A program made the translations under genes and the position numbers. The notes beneath the pieces were generated by a model. The model ran no database searches. It had not been told where the DNA came from and was given only the letters and a program-made list of their open reading frames with translations. A DNA stretch of 64,000 bases from Octopus sinensis (lineage: Eukaryota): contig NW_021832220.1 of the NCBI RefSeq assembly GCF_006345805.1, positions 124,001 to 188,000 on the forward strand. Reading direction: 5' to 3'. Below are positions 5,176 to 58,452 of the stretch, one piece after another. Within the stretch, counting starts at the first letter, position 1. Each line of letters opens with the position of its first letter.

Positions 5176-5313
5176 CTATGTATGTACCAACTATATCCCA
5201 TCTATTTCTGTACCACATACACATTTTAATTGTACAAGAATTGAATATTTTGGAAATCCAAAGTGCCTTTTGGCAGATGCATTCACCATAAATCTTGCAG
5301 CCTCTGCAAGAAC
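5176..5313 (-). CDS. Gene A exon 2, Cys-rich domain (G)SCRGCKIYGECICQKALWISKIFNSCTIKMCMWYRNRWDIVGTYI(G)
   Basis: 138-nt open phase1-phase1 exon with acceptor ttttttaatgaAG and donor GTAAGT. It aligns without gaps from the first Cys onward to exon 50475-50621 (all 6 Cys, GECIC, 3 Trp and the Gly-x-aromatic-Ile-Gly end conserved). Confidence 0.8.
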
Positions 5314-6539
5314 CTTCATTAAAAAAACAATTAATGAAATAATAAAAGAATAAGCATCTAATATGAATTGATAAATTGATATAATATTTTGGGTGAAACC
5401 ATGCTATTAATAAGTTATCTGGAATGGATTTTGCCCTTTTTGAAATTCATTCATTCTCAAATGTTATATTTCTGCCTATGTAAATAGGATCTCAGTTCAA
5501 GTTTGGAATCAGGAATTAGGAAATAGCGTCTTTAACATTATAAAAGGTGTAATGCTATAAATAAATTATTTAAGAGCGCCCAAGTGAATAATTTATATAA
5601 TTTTAATGAATCAGAAGTTATTTTTGAGGACATGCAGTACAGTATCTCTCAAACTACACATCTGATGTGTTAGCCACATTGTTGACTCATCCAATACTAC
5701 AAACTTAACAAAATAATTCTTTTCTTCACCTGCTTCCTTAACATAATATGTAAAACCCTGATTATAAACACAATAATATTCATTTTACTTTTGGAATTTA
5801 ATATTTTTCAGTTCCTCACATTTTACAAATAGTTTTTTGCGTTCTTTCAAAATTTTTATAAAGGAAAAGTAATTTCTATTGCATCCATCTTGCTACCTTA
5901 ATTTCCATCTCATCTTCATTCATACACATTCATCAAATATTCTCTGCAAAACTAAATTCTTTCTGTGCCTATTTGTAAATGTCCATTCTTTTACATTTCC
6001 TGAAAATTTATCTACACGCTACACACATCTCTCTCATTCAATATAACATGAAACTTTCTATATTTTTCTAGAAAGAAAGTCATATTTCAAATAATCTCTC
6101 ACATTTTTAGTTGTAACTGTAATTATGAAATTGTTTGATGTGCTCCGAAAGAGCAGAATATATACGGCCATTTGTAAGGATTCATTTTTATTTAATGTAT
6201 CTAATGTAAAATATATAGACACAAATTTCTTTATAAATGTGTTTGAGTGTGTATGTGTGCATGTGAGTGTAAGTGTGTATATGTGTGTGCACATGTATCT
6301 GCATATTAGCTTAGCATTATATAATTGTAATAGAGCTGATTCACATTCCGATTCTTATGTCATATATACATCCATTCATACGTACATATATACATATGCA
6401 CACACACCTATATATACATAGAAAAAAATTAGGAAATGGAGTAGATAAAATCCAGGCTACCTGCTTCGAAAGTTGTTTTTTTATATCTTCTTAGGATCCC
6501 TTTAAGCTCACTAACTCCCTATACCTTGATCCTTGGATC

Positions 6540-6571
<32 letters not shown>

Positions 6572-7294
6572 ATCGCTCTCTCTTTCACTCTACATATATA
6601 TATATTTATACGTAAATGTTGAACAATGAAAATGAGTGGATATAATTTATTTATTTGTGAATTATGGCTACCATTAGTTTCATGAAACATGAAACTAATG
6701 GTAGCCTTAATTTACAAATGAAGAAATATATATATACCATACGTATATACATATATGTGTGTGTGTGTTTATATATATGTATATATATATATATATTTAG
6801 AAACTGCTACTTATTTAGAAACAATATCAGGGATTATACTCCCCTTGTTGACAAGTAATCTGTCTATAAACTGGTCACAGACGAACACACAGACACAGGT
6901 TTTTATCAGCTGCTTGACCAACAATAGCTGCAATATATTTTCTCCCTAGCTGCTTCCTAAACATACTGCCACACATACATAGGCTCACACACACATACAT
7001 GTAGGTAGTTTCTCACACCCAAATAAGATAGCTTTCATTCTTAAAACAATTCGAACATTAACACTAGTTATACAGAATATATTCACACTCTTTGGTTTTC
7101 TGTAATTCTTCCCCTACCCTATGTTAACCGAAATTTGACCTCGAATTATCTCAACGGACTTTTTCGTCGGCCTTCACCCACCCTGACGTCAACGCATATT
7201 GAGAGACAGTTTTGTGCCATTCATACCATGGGCTCCTAGGGAGCGTTTGTTCGAAAAGCTTGCTGCGCATTTGTTTGGAGATTTAAGTTCCTGG

Positions 7295-7380
7295 ATTTTC
7301 CTGAAGAGAATGCTGCAAAATGGTCTCCTTATTCAGTCCGAATTAGGGAATTTGCAGCCTTTGAAACATGTGTAGAAAAT
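7295..7380 (+). ncRNA. Type I minimal hammerhead ribozyme (solo)
   Basis: attttc-CTGAAGA-gaa.gctgcaaa...tttgcagc.ttt-GAAA-C-atgt-G-TA/gaaaat. Stem I is a perfect 6 bp, stem II is long with G10.1-U11.1, and GUA cleavage is predicted after 7374. Confidence 0.75.
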
Positions 7381-55312: not shown

Positions 55313-56162
55313 TCATCATCATCATCATCGTTTAACGTCCGTTTTCCATGCTAGCGTGGTTTGGGCAATTTGACTGAGGTCTGACGAACAAGACTCCAAT
55401 CTGATTTGGCAGAGTTTCTACAGCTGGATGCCGTTCCTAACGCCAACCACTCCGAGAGTGTAGTGGGTGCTTTTACGTGCCACCTGCACGAGGGCCAGTC
55501 AGGTGGTACTGGCAACAGCCATGTTCAAATGGTCCTTTTATGTGCCACCTGCACAGGAGCCAGTCCGGCGGCACTGGCACCGACCTCGCTCAAATGTTTT
55601 TTCACATGCTCCCAGCACAAGGCGACGCAGGTAACGATTACACTTGAATGGTGTTTTTAACATGCCATTGGCACGAAGGCTAGCTTGTTACTCTGGTAAT
55701 GATCTCACTCGTATGGTACTCTTAGTGCTCCACTAGCAACGGATGCCAGTCACCGAGTTTGATTTCAATTTCGATTTCACTTGCCTCAACAGGTCTTTGC
55801 AAGCAGAGTTTAGTGTCCAATGAAGGAAAGGCACGCATAAGTGGACTGGTTACACCCCTGGCATAGGCCACAAGGTTATGGTCTCACTTGCGCTTGCTGA
55901 GAAGGTTATGGTTTCACTTGCACTTGCCGAGTCTTCTCAAGCATAGCATAACTCCAGAGGTCCTGGTCACTAATCATTGCCTCGGTGAGACCCAATGTTT
56001 GAAGGTCATGCTTCACCACCTCATCTCAGGTCTTCCTGGGTCTACCTCTTCCACAGGTTCCCTCAACTGCTAGGGTGTGGTACTTTTTCACACAGCTATC
56101 CACATCCATTCTCGCCACATGACCATACCAGTGCAGTCGTCTCTCTTGTACACCACATCTGA
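55313..56162 (-). mobile_element. RTE LINE 3' fragment with (GAT)n tail
   Basis: RLHWYGHVARM..GRPRKT on the minus strand, followed by the 3' UTR and tail. Confidence 0.88.
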
Positions 56163-56939
56163 CTCATTTTAAAAGGGTAAAATCGATACAAATTTTACCA
56201 CTATGGTCTAAAGAACTCTGCAAAAGAAAAAAATAACATCAGAATGTAAAAATTAATGCTTAATTTGGTGTAAGTATTGAAAATGTATTCCTAATTTGGT
56301 CATATAAAAATGTGACAAGACTTTCTTTCCAACCTAGTATCTCAAAATTGAGTACCACCAAATTCAAAGAATAACTATTTCCAAGAACTTGCTATCATTG
56401 ATAATCGAGAAAACTTGTCTGAAGACATAGATATAGAGGAGATTTGCGGGTGGACGATATAAATGATAAAATAATATGATGATACTAGGTGCTACTTACA
56501 CGGTGGACTTTACCTTGAAGATCATGATAATATTTTTTCACCCGAAATGATAATTCAAAGAACAATATCTTTAATAAGACATCATTTAGTGAGTACAATG
56601 AAACATGTGTGTGCAGAACGACATCTAAGCCAGAAAATATAAAACTGTTGCTGTAAACTACGAACGGAAAGATGACCGACAGATAAGCATTCTTTAAATT
56701 CATCCAGTTACCTACCTAGTAATATTTCTGCGCAATTGATTAACCTTTAGTTATCTCTATTCTGTTTGACTCTGTCCATTTCAGCCTCACGTCTCGTGTT
56801 AAATATATATATAATTCTATGGTTCCTCTCAATTGTCTAAGATAAATTTAGCTCACGCATCTCCCCTAAATCTGCAAAATATCTCTCTCTCAATTAGGTC
56901 TCTTATACCTACTACTAAGTATTCCTTTTTCAAGAAATG

Positions 56940-57715
56940 AGAGGCGCCTCTTCATGGCTGCTAGTTTTCGCGGTGTACCCACCCTCTCCCCCTTTACAGG
57001 AAGTCCCAGATTTTGTCATCCTTGGTTGTCTCCCATGTACACATCAAAAGTCTTACGTCACCCCCACCCCCTGCCATAAAAGGTAGTGATCATACATTGC
57101 AAAATACGATAGTGTAGTGTACGCGGTTTGAACTTAAGTCTTTTGTTTGTCTATGAATCCTGCTAAACGCGAGTTTTCTTTTCAGGTTCATGAAGCTACT
57201 GTCCCCCAGTCCCAAGGTGCCTAGGGCCTATACCCCCCACACCCTCAGGTTTGGCACCCTCAACGTTGGCACACTGAAAGGTAGGTCTGGTGAGATTGTT
57301 GCGTTGCTTGAATGGAAGTGTGTTGATATGTGCTGCATTCAAGTAGTGAGGTGGAGATGAGGTTCTGCTAGGTTCCTCACAGGCAAAGAACACAGGTACA
57401 AGATTTTCTAGGCTGGGAACACTGACGGGGTCGGGGGCGTGGGTATACTTATCGCTGAAAAATGGGTAGATAAGGTAATTGAGGCAATCAGAGTATGTGA
57501 CAGAATACTTAAGATTAGATTAGTGCTTCATCATGGATTAGCAACCATTATATCGGCCTATGCCCCTCAACCAGGGCTACCCGATGGACAGAAAGACCGA
57601 TTCTATGACAGCCTACTGCAGACTACCTCATCGACGAACGACATGCTGGGGGCTTCCATGGCATACATGGAGGCTACGGTTATGGTTCCCGCAATGAGGA
57701 GTAGATGCTACCTAA
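56940..57715 (+). mobile_element. RTE LINE 5' fragment (UTR + AP endonuclease N-terminus)
   Basis: FGTLNVGTLKGRSGEIV..DMCCIQ..GVGILIAEKW..ISAYAPQ. Confidence 0.85.
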
Positions 57716-58397
57716 ATGATGATGATGATGATGATGATGATCTTCATCATATAAGAATTGAAATCTTTTTTAAGACTGGCAAACTTTAAAGTCAATATTT
57801 GTGAAAACAGTCTAAAATAAACGAATCATTTGGAAATGTTCGTAAATAAAATATTGAAATCAATTCGATAAATGTGCTGCAAAGAGCATTCAATAGTTTA
57901 AAAAGTCCTCTTGCTGAAAATTTTGTAGTATCACTTTATCAGGGATTTCGTCCAGTAGTCCTATTATCAAAAGTATTCCAGCCATGACCACCTCCAATAC
58001 GATAGAGTCTCGTGAAGAGGTGCTGACTGCTGTTTTTAGCAGGCTAACTAATTATGTAGAAGCTCACCCGTTGCTTCATTTTTAGAGTCGGTCTAGTGAG
58101 AGACGAGCGAATACACAGGAGTACAGAAGCAACGGCCACCACTGCTGCAACTAAATCTGAGCCCTGCGCAAAAGAAGGAAGCACTGTCAACAGCAACACA
58201 ACATTTATGTTTAGTAAACGATAGAGTGGTGTACAAGGGTGGTGTCCCTTAAGCACACTCAACTCATGAACATTAGGCACATACGTGTACTGACATGTAA
58301 GAAGTGAATAATGTAATTACAACAAGCCGTCTTTCATAATTTCATCCTAAATGTTCCACAGTAATATCGATAAGATAGATGAGAAATAATAACAAAC

Positions 58398-58452
58398 CTT
58401 CATTAGTTGGTGTAATTAGAAAAATAAACATAATCATCAGAAAAGCCTTCAT
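58398..58452 (-). CDS. Gene B exon 1, signal peptide MKAFLMIMFIFLITPTNE(A)
   Basis: 55 nt from ATG (preceded by gcag) to phase-1 donor G|GTTTGT; 43/55 identical to 9470-9524; joins in frame to 50475-50621. Confidence 0.72.

Follow-up and report, generated by a model that had tools for sequence, protein, structure and literature searches.

Two tandem paralogs in Octopus sinensis define a putative octopus-restricted family of secreted eight-cysteine proteins

In a 64-kb stretch of the Octopus sinensis genome (contig NW_021832220.1, positions 124,001 to 188,000; hereafter the window), two paralogous genes, which we call gene A and gene B, lie in tandem on the minus strand about 49 kb apart. We judge it likely, with a probability of roughly 0.8, that the two are real paralogs and belong to an octopus-restricted family of secreted eight-cysteine proteins encoded by three coding exons. 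As read from its sequence, gene B constitutes a complete gene model with three coding exons, and its product is presumably a predicted secreted protein of about 8.5 kDa whose eight cysteines would pair into four disulfides. Both genes are new and apparently unannotated, and the family to which they belong has database entries but no description.

The signal-peptide exon of gene A (9470-9524, 55 nt) ends in phase 1 and encodes MRAVQMIMFLLLIVPTDA plus the G of a split codon, and its cysteine-rich exon 2 (5176-5313, 138 nt, phase 1-1) encodes (G)SCRGCKIYGECICQKALWISKIFNSCTIKMCMWYRNRWDIVGTYI. The equivalent exons of gene B occupy 58398-58452 (55 nt, ending in phase 1; MKAFLMIMFIFLITPTNE plus the G of a split codon) and 50475-50621 (147 nt, phase 1-1; (A)LQPKCIGCKVLGECICGRSFWVTETVDLCMMRECRWVYEEWRVIGAFI). 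With exon borders marked by slashes, the splice junctions read ...ataaagcag/ATGAGG...GATGCAG/gtttgt for exon 1 of gene A (9524-9470), ...aatgaag/GTTCTTGC...ACATAG/gtaagt for its exon 2 (5313-5176), ...ccattgcag/ATGAAG...AATGAAG/gtttgt for exon 1 of gene B (58452-58398), and ...ttctttag/CTTTAC...TCATAG/gtaaga for its exon 2 (50621-50475), where the acceptor is a strong polypyrimidine/TAG site. These four exons had been proposed in an original prediction made from the sequence alone, and their positions, strand, equal first-exon lengths, phase-1 junctions and GT/AG sites are all borne out.

When the window is searched against itself, the exon-2 peptides of A and B match each other with E=1.7e-13 (36% identity over 44 residues) and have no other real match in it; the signal peptides do so with E=1e-3. 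Hidden Markov models (HMMs) built for each exon and run over the window recover exactly two first exons (E=3.9e-11 for A and 3e-11 for B), two second exons (E=9.5e-26 and 5e-27, respectively) and one third exon, with E-values spanning 1e-11 to 1e-27 and the next best match at E>0.2. The pairing of the A and B exons is thus real and far above chance. The claim that the window holds two paralogous genes for a signal peptide followed by a cysteine-rich protein, as part of a clustered multigene family, is supported both by this similarity and by a locus in Octopus bimaculoides that is described below.

A profile made from A and B was compared with 1.84 billion representative proteins and found only three of them, all from O. 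bimaculoides (E 1e-22 to 1e-18); a five-member profile, applied to 5.8 billion clusters, yielded these three again and no others (E=5e-41 to 2e-27). The relatives are RefSeq/Gnomon models of two loci, LOC128250447 (XP_052831430-435, isoforms X2-X5, 82-92 aa) and LOC106882268 (XP_014788367/8, isoforms X1 and X2), and both loci carry the name 'uncharacterized protein'. A word-indexed search with gene B gave no match, and no transcript-assembly contigs were found for the O. bimaculoides proteins. The description of the genes as hidden in the original prediction therefore suits A and B, whose products have no entry among the roughly 15 billion proteins of the collection searched, but not the family, which is annotated under these two loci.

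Both exon 2s are symmetric (phase 1-1) and end without a stop codon at a CATAG/GTAAG donor, so the A and B products as first proposed were incomplete and the genes must continue. Two of the isoforms from the relatives run on into a tail of the form DC...RY..EG...C, reading DCTNIIATLTEQTRYVTEGLSYCTI or DCDKVYDALKDPKRYAPEGVIHCKNDN after '...FI'. We located the third exon of gene B both with these O. bimaculoides tails and with a splice-pattern search, and the two approaches led to the same place on the minus strand, 36684-36605. Here the sequence reads tcctctcttttttag/AT TGT AAA ... CAT TGC ACA GGT AAA TAA, encoding (D)CKDVYTTLRNPSRFVFEGVSHCTGK in an exon of 80 nt that ends with the stop codon TAA at 36607-36605 (exon-3 HMM, E=1.2e-15). 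The tails thus predicted an exon that was then found with a strong acceptor (tcctctcttttttag), a stop codon and downstream AATAAA signals, which lie 408 and 520 nt beyond it. The exon-3 region of LOC128250447 aligns with it at 69% identity over 162 nt. With this exon in place, the gene B precursor is 93 aa long and ends in ...AFI-DCKDVYTTLRNPSRFVFEGVSHCTGK, its introns measure 7.8 kb (intron 1) and 13.8 kb (intron 2), and two more cysteines are added, giving eight in the mature protein and not six. The translations in the original prediction were right as far as they went, except that the glycine written as their final residue belongs to a codon split between exons 2 and 3, which specifies Asp in gene B (G/AT) and D or E in the relatives. 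Reading on through the donor as coding sequence was considered and rejected: beyond exon 2 the A and B sequences align only with indels, and A meets a stop in the first unit of an adjoining satellite.

Gene structures were compared with those of one O. bimaculoides locus (CM046621.1:39,951,686-39,974,262, here L001). The coding exons of LOC128250447 lie at L001 positions 10001-10055, 11596-11742 and 12109-12185 (55, 147 and 77 nt) and have phases identical to those of gene B; the first two also equal the gene B exons in length, and the last measures 77 nt against 80 nt. A second, A-like paralog, on the opposite (minus) strand, has its exon 2 at 20537-20403 and its exon 3 at 16670-16594, with intact splice sites, and reads DCSGCPVFDQCICSK...TYI followed by ECDQVPQIFKQRPKYLIGGTILCKRS and a stop. 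Its exon 2 is 57% identical to that of gene A at the protein level; no gene call is listed at its position, and L001 as read does not extend to its signal exon. Clustering of the family thus extends to O. bimaculoides, where it is under-annotated and has more members than gene calls. In arrangement the two species differ, the L001 paralogs being convergent and 8 kb apart whereas A and B are in tandem and 49 kb apart.

The O. bimaculoides models resemble A and B in having a 55-nt signal exon, a cysteine-rich phase 1-1 exon of 135-147 nt (138, 147, 147 and 135 nt across the family) and, as seen in gene B, a short terminal exon, and in sharing a framework of eight cysteines (for gene A, the six of exon 2) and three tryptophans without indels, with 41-57% identity to A and B and profile E-values from 1e-18 to 1e-41. 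None of them, however, is identical or orthologue-like, since exon-2 synonymous divergence (dS) is at least 0.7, and their introns are 0.4-3.7 kb long compared with 4.2-13.8 kb in the window genes. Both L001 genes and the X2 model of LOC106882268 stop 24-25 codons into exon 3, giving proteins of 92-94 aa. Isoform X1 of the same locus (XP_014788367.1) continues instead after '...GIYI' with GKITLQHYKITRSG..., where G-K is the reading that a GGTAAG donor would yield if translated, as it would in A and B. This model seems to reflect intron retention and not a genuine isoform of the protein.

These gene structures bear on whether the A and B exon pairs might be alternative 5' cassettes of a single gene with shared constant exons, as in the protocadherin or UGT1 clusters, or else the N-terminal module of a larger multi-domain protein. 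Such an arrangement would fit the symmetric, donor-ended exon 2s on the same strand in tandem, as well as the overlapping gene calls in L001 that have different starts and a common end. Gene B nevertheless has its own terminal exon, complete with stop codon and poly(A) signals and situated between B and A, the same ending recurs in both L001 genes and LOC106882268 X2, and the differing starts in L001 look like upstream exons that are mostly untranslated. We therefore regard an organization of this kind as very improbable and separate three-coding-exon genes as the better description.

An untranslated 5' exon probably does precede the signal-peptide exon. Acceptor-like sequence stands directly 5' of the ATG exons: tatttttttccattgcag precedes exon 1 of gene B, and a polypyrimidine tract with ...gcag is found at 9525-9550 and 58453-58480 in the window and at 9975-10000 in L001, such that the ATG follows either ...ccattgcag or ...aaagcag in A, B and L001. 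Because this sequence adjoins the ATG, and because gene calls in L001 start 5-10 kb further upstream, the exon for the signal peptide is probably the second one in the transcript. We sought the upstream exon of gene B in the window by its similarity to the upstream exon in L001, and the blastn match obtained was noise.

The spacing originally proposed for the cysteine-rich core, C-x2-C-x5-C-x-C-x12-C-x4-C-x-W-x4-W-x3-G, proves ungapped and invariant in A, B and the three O. bimaculoides relatives. A fuller version, C-x2-C-x5-C-x-C-x4-W-x7-C-x4-C-x-W-x4-W-x3-G-x2-I, is likewise invariant in all five sequences, so that an exon-2 core of 45-48 residues holds six invariant cysteines, three invariant tryptophans and one invariant glycine. 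Adding the terminal exon, for which the signature is [D/E]-C-x11-[R/K]-[Y/F]-x3-G-x3-C-x2-4-stop (cysteines 7 and 8) and to which gene B conforms, the three tryptophans are retained across the five genes, as are all eight cysteines wherever the terminal exon was read (for gene A, the six of exon 2), and the core is free of indels. The first exon has its own signature, namely 55 nt encoding M-[RK]-A and a hydrophobic run, phase 1 and a G/GTTTG donor, and this is seen in A, B and the L001 copy of LOC128250447. By inspection, position 2 of the predicted signal peptides is basic and the hydrophobic run spans 12-13 residues, while in A (T-D-A/G) and Ob447 (A-T-A/Y) the residues at -3 and -1 are small. 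The mature proteins would have masses of 8.3-8.8 kDa and isoelectric points of 6.9-8.7, and contain no N-glycosylation sites.

Evolutionary rates were estimated by the Nei-Gojobori method as the ratio of nonsynonymous to synonymous divergence (dN/dS). For exon 2 the ratio is 0.17-0.57, at dS values from about 0.7 to saturation, and the proportion of nonsynonymous differences is significantly below that of synonymous ones when gene B is compared with Ob447 (p<1e-4) or with ObA (p=0.004). Counts in the other exons are very small: exon 1 gives dN/dS of 0.76-1.25 with dS of 0.22-0.36, and exon 3 gives 1.3-1.9 with dS of 0.3-0.6, based on only 4.5-7 synonymous differences. These values indicate that exon 2 is under coding constraint and fit old paralogs rather than demonstrated positive selection, and the suggestion in the original prediction that the family is fast-evolving was not upheld, given the low exon-2 ratios and near-saturated dS. 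The constraint on exon 2, together with the invariant cysteines and tryptophans and the intact splice sites, argues that A and B are functional protein-coding genes, which we infer to be expressed.

Several observations weigh against this interpretation. The in-frame acceptor of gene A exon 2 is a weak AAG (5314/5313), and a rival CAG 10 nt inside the exon (5304/5303) shifts the frame into a stop. The exon-3 HMM matches only gene B's copy in the window, so that the terminal exon of gene A was not found there; as the sequence reads, the putative exon lies beyond the start of the window, on the far side of a 22-bp satellite that takes up 5 kb or more of intron 2. With a frame-breaking acceptor in competition and its last exon outside the window, gene A could be weakly expressed or decaying. 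The 13.8-kb intron 2 of gene B, which contains a 535-bp tandem array, compares with 0.37 kb and 3.7 kb for the corresponding O. bimaculoides introns, the -3 residue of its signal peptide (N) is atypical, and all the signal peptides were judged by eye only. Exon-2 dN/dS is not significantly below 1 for A-B (ratio 0.56) or for A-Ob447, with p=0.18-0.19 over the two comparisons. In two AlphaFold2 (AF2) runs the mean confidence (pLDDT) was 44.9 and 49.6, so the three strands and short helix that appear in both models are unreliable, and the five-member profile found nothing better than E=0.82 among PDB sequences. No real Pfam match to any of the five members was obtained at E<=10, with pacifastin, VWC and zf-RVT among the families covered, and Pfam thus supplies no link to function. 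Net charge is near neutral and not markedly cationic. Finally, no paper in the library searched contains the locus identifiers, the protein identifiers or the family peptide strings, and a topical literature search returned nothing relevant, leaving no functional link from that side; the O. bimaculoides models likewise carry no function, expression pattern or publication.

The features of gene A, the swollen intron 2 of gene B, the absence of both products from the protein collection and the A-B ratio would suit one or both copies being non-functional, either as unexpressed duplicates or as young pseudogenes whose frames are intact because too little time has passed for them to decay. Against this, dS between the copies runs from at least 0.7 up to saturation, and yet the cysteines, tryptophans, glycine, exon lengths, phases and splice dinucleotides are all intact, with no stop or frameshift, and gene B shows significant purifying selection relative to the O. 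bimaculoides relatives. We therefore consider non-functional copies improbable and retain functional genes as the preferred interpretation.

Less probable still, to the point that we give it almost no credence, is that the cysteine-rich exon derives from a transposable element and not from a host gene, for example as a piece of the zinc-binding tail (zf-RVT) of a long interspersed nuclear element (LINE) reverse transcriptase (RT). LINE pieces are abundant in the window, zf-RVT (PF13966) also starts with C-x2-C, and gene A exon 2 has weak similarity to two of the window's zf-RVT tails, at 33812-33732 (E=0.006) and 24715-24825 (E=1.5). The matching residues, however, are ones specific to A near its C-terminal end (R.D.VGTYI) and not the family-invariant ones, exon 2 of gene B has no match (E>4), and PF13966 matches the true tails in the window but no family member at E<=10. 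Copy number points the same way. The original prediction had named a high-copy transposable-element origin of exon 2 as the outcome that would overturn it, but the exon is represented by two copies in the window and three matches among the 1.84 billion proteins, compared with 4611 for a real RT fragment from the window. Moreover, the exon is flanked on one side by the exon for a signal peptide and on the other by a terminal exon that is conserved, as befits a host gene.

Nucleotide conservation in the family is unevenly distributed. An ungapped block of about 185 nt, made up of exon 1 and the ~130 nt with which intron 1 begins, shows 73-78% identity in all pairwise comparisons (9340-9528 and 58268-58456 in the window; 9997-10185 in L001). 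The intronic part of the block occupies 9340-9469 in gene A, where identity to B and LOC128250447 is 74-77%, and 58268-58397 in gene B, both on the minus strand. The original prediction had noted that the intron starts remain alignable, and this is confirmed: A and B are 77% identical without gaps over the first 130 nt of intron 1 and 71% identical over the first ~90 nt of intron 2, whereas the remainder of intron 1 is unalignable between them and exon 2 is only 58-70% identical at the nucleotide level. Synonymous divergence is also higher in exon 2 (dS about 1-2) than in exons 1 and 3 (0.2-0.6), and for B-Ob447 the difference between exon 2 and exons 1 plus 3 has p=0.004. An RNA structure in the exon-1/intron block was considered and rejected, as the covariation term was only -0.31 and there was no Rfam match. 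Nucleotide-level constraint, local gene conversion and a diversification regime like that of conopeptides are all possible explanations for the block and for the synonymous behaviour of exon 2.

In the classical conopeptide pattern, nucleotide conservation is stronger in the signal exon and the intron next to it than in the exon that encodes the mature peptide. The A/B family resembles conotoxin-type genes in this respect, and also in its three short exons and long introns. Conotoxin genes of cone snails mostly have three short exons, with long introns rich in transposons between them, and their products are small, secreted and rich in disulfides (PMC10561478). The likeness is one of organization only, for the family has no sequence similarity to conotoxins, no propeptide region and no adjacent CC pair, and the accelerated evolution of conotoxins (dN/dS >1 in the mature exon) is not seen in exon 2 at 0.17-0.57. 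It is thus best regarded as an analogy and not as membership, with no known link to a venom or salivary gland.

Among the known domains, pacifastin (PF05375) and VWC resemble the family in being small modules of extracellular proteins that contain at least six cysteines, C-x-C and C-x4-C elements among them. Pacifastin cysteines are spaced C-x9-12-C-x2-C-x-C-x6-8-C-x4-C. The A/B family differs with its C-x2-C-x5-C-x-C-x12-C-x4-C and two further cysteines, which places it outside PF05375, and the Pfam result likewise leaves it outside VWC and single-VWC. The decision in the original prediction to assign no family, made on account of the mismatched pacifastin/VWC spacing, thus appears to have been sound, as neither Pfam nor the PDB supplies a relative: a Foldseek comparison of the AF2 model with the PDB gave no match at E<=0.001 and no TM-score (query-length-normalised) above 0.47.

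According to the view that we favour, the precursor would enter the secretory pathway and lose its signal peptide at about the exon 1/2 junction, after which the cysteine and tryptophan scaffold may fold into a compact, beta-rich domain locked by disulfides. The variable residues between the fixed positions would then form a surface that binds an extracellular target, in a family that has probably diversified by local duplication. No single role stands out: an effector of the defence, saliva or venom type is conceivable, a secreted signal or pheromone only slightly less so, and a structural or matrix component, or something else, takes up the similarly large remainder of our expectation. The roles floated in the original prediction (antimicrobial, toxin, protease-inhibitor or pheromone-like) are likewise speculative. 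Their near-neutral charge speaks mildly against the mature proteins being classical cationic antimicrobial peptides. A bolder, if unlikely, possibility is that the family constitutes a hitherto undescribed, octopod-specific class of secreted four-disulfide effectors with a new fold, acting in saliva or venom, immunity or chemical communication, and that it evolves in a conopeptide-like manner, its signal exon and intron being held while the core exon diverges even synonymously.

Cephalopod genomes are rich in lineage-restricted genes that still await a role, whether in suckers, skin, saliva, immunity or reproduction. In this context, the analysis provides a complete model for gene B, a family signature (three coding exons, eight cysteines and three tryptophans) and per-exon profiles that can be used for mining other cephalopod genomes. 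If the proteins are indeed salivary, immune or pheromonal effectors, they would represent a new disulfide-rich scaffold; if the genes are not expressed, they would merely be a pair of unannotated paralogs.

The visible part of gene A intron 2 is occupied by a 22-bp minisatellite (1-5084), which is separated from exon 2 by 92 nt and continues past the edge of the window. Only two kinds occur among its 231 units, GTAATTGACTTGATTTATCTGA (135 units) and GTAATTGACTTCATTTATCTGA (96 units), and unit position 12 is all that distinguishes them. The 5 kb is otherwise free of substitutions and indels, and the two kinds are intermingled without apparent periodicity. Possible explanations are a binary pattern like that of minisatellite variant repeats and an artefact of long-read assembly. 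The array in intron 2 of gene B (46724-50094), which is unrelated to the minisatellite, comprises 5.2 units of 535 bp with 99.8% identity (47327-50094) and an inverted copy (46724-47328), with a palindromic junction near 47328. Neither repeat is coding, since stops interrupt every reading frame of the 22-bp satellite on the gene strand and the 535-bp unit length is not divisible by 3.

Degraded pieces of non-LTR (non-long-terminal-repeat) retrotransposons are scattered on both strands over 11876-34088 and 60108-60482. They include open reading frames (ORFs) for a LINE endonuclease and RT with frameshifts (18947-21540, plus strand), a further RT (29413-30132, plus strand), zf-RVT tails (24604-25281 on the plus strand and 33402-34088 on the minus strand) and an RT remnant (60108-60482, minus strand). 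Just upstream of the endonuclease/RT ORFs, a 456-aa ORF (17580-18950, plus strand) has no Pfam match and contains a 291-bp direct duplication (17638-18223, 95% identity); it may be a LINE ORF1. A repeat pair at 11728-12199 and 29738-29276 is 92% identical. Upstream of gene B are two self-complementary palindromes, at 62183-62626 (445 nt, 91%) and 63056-63436 (~380 nt, 66%), which may be foldback elements or resemble miniature inverted-repeat transposable elements (MITEs).

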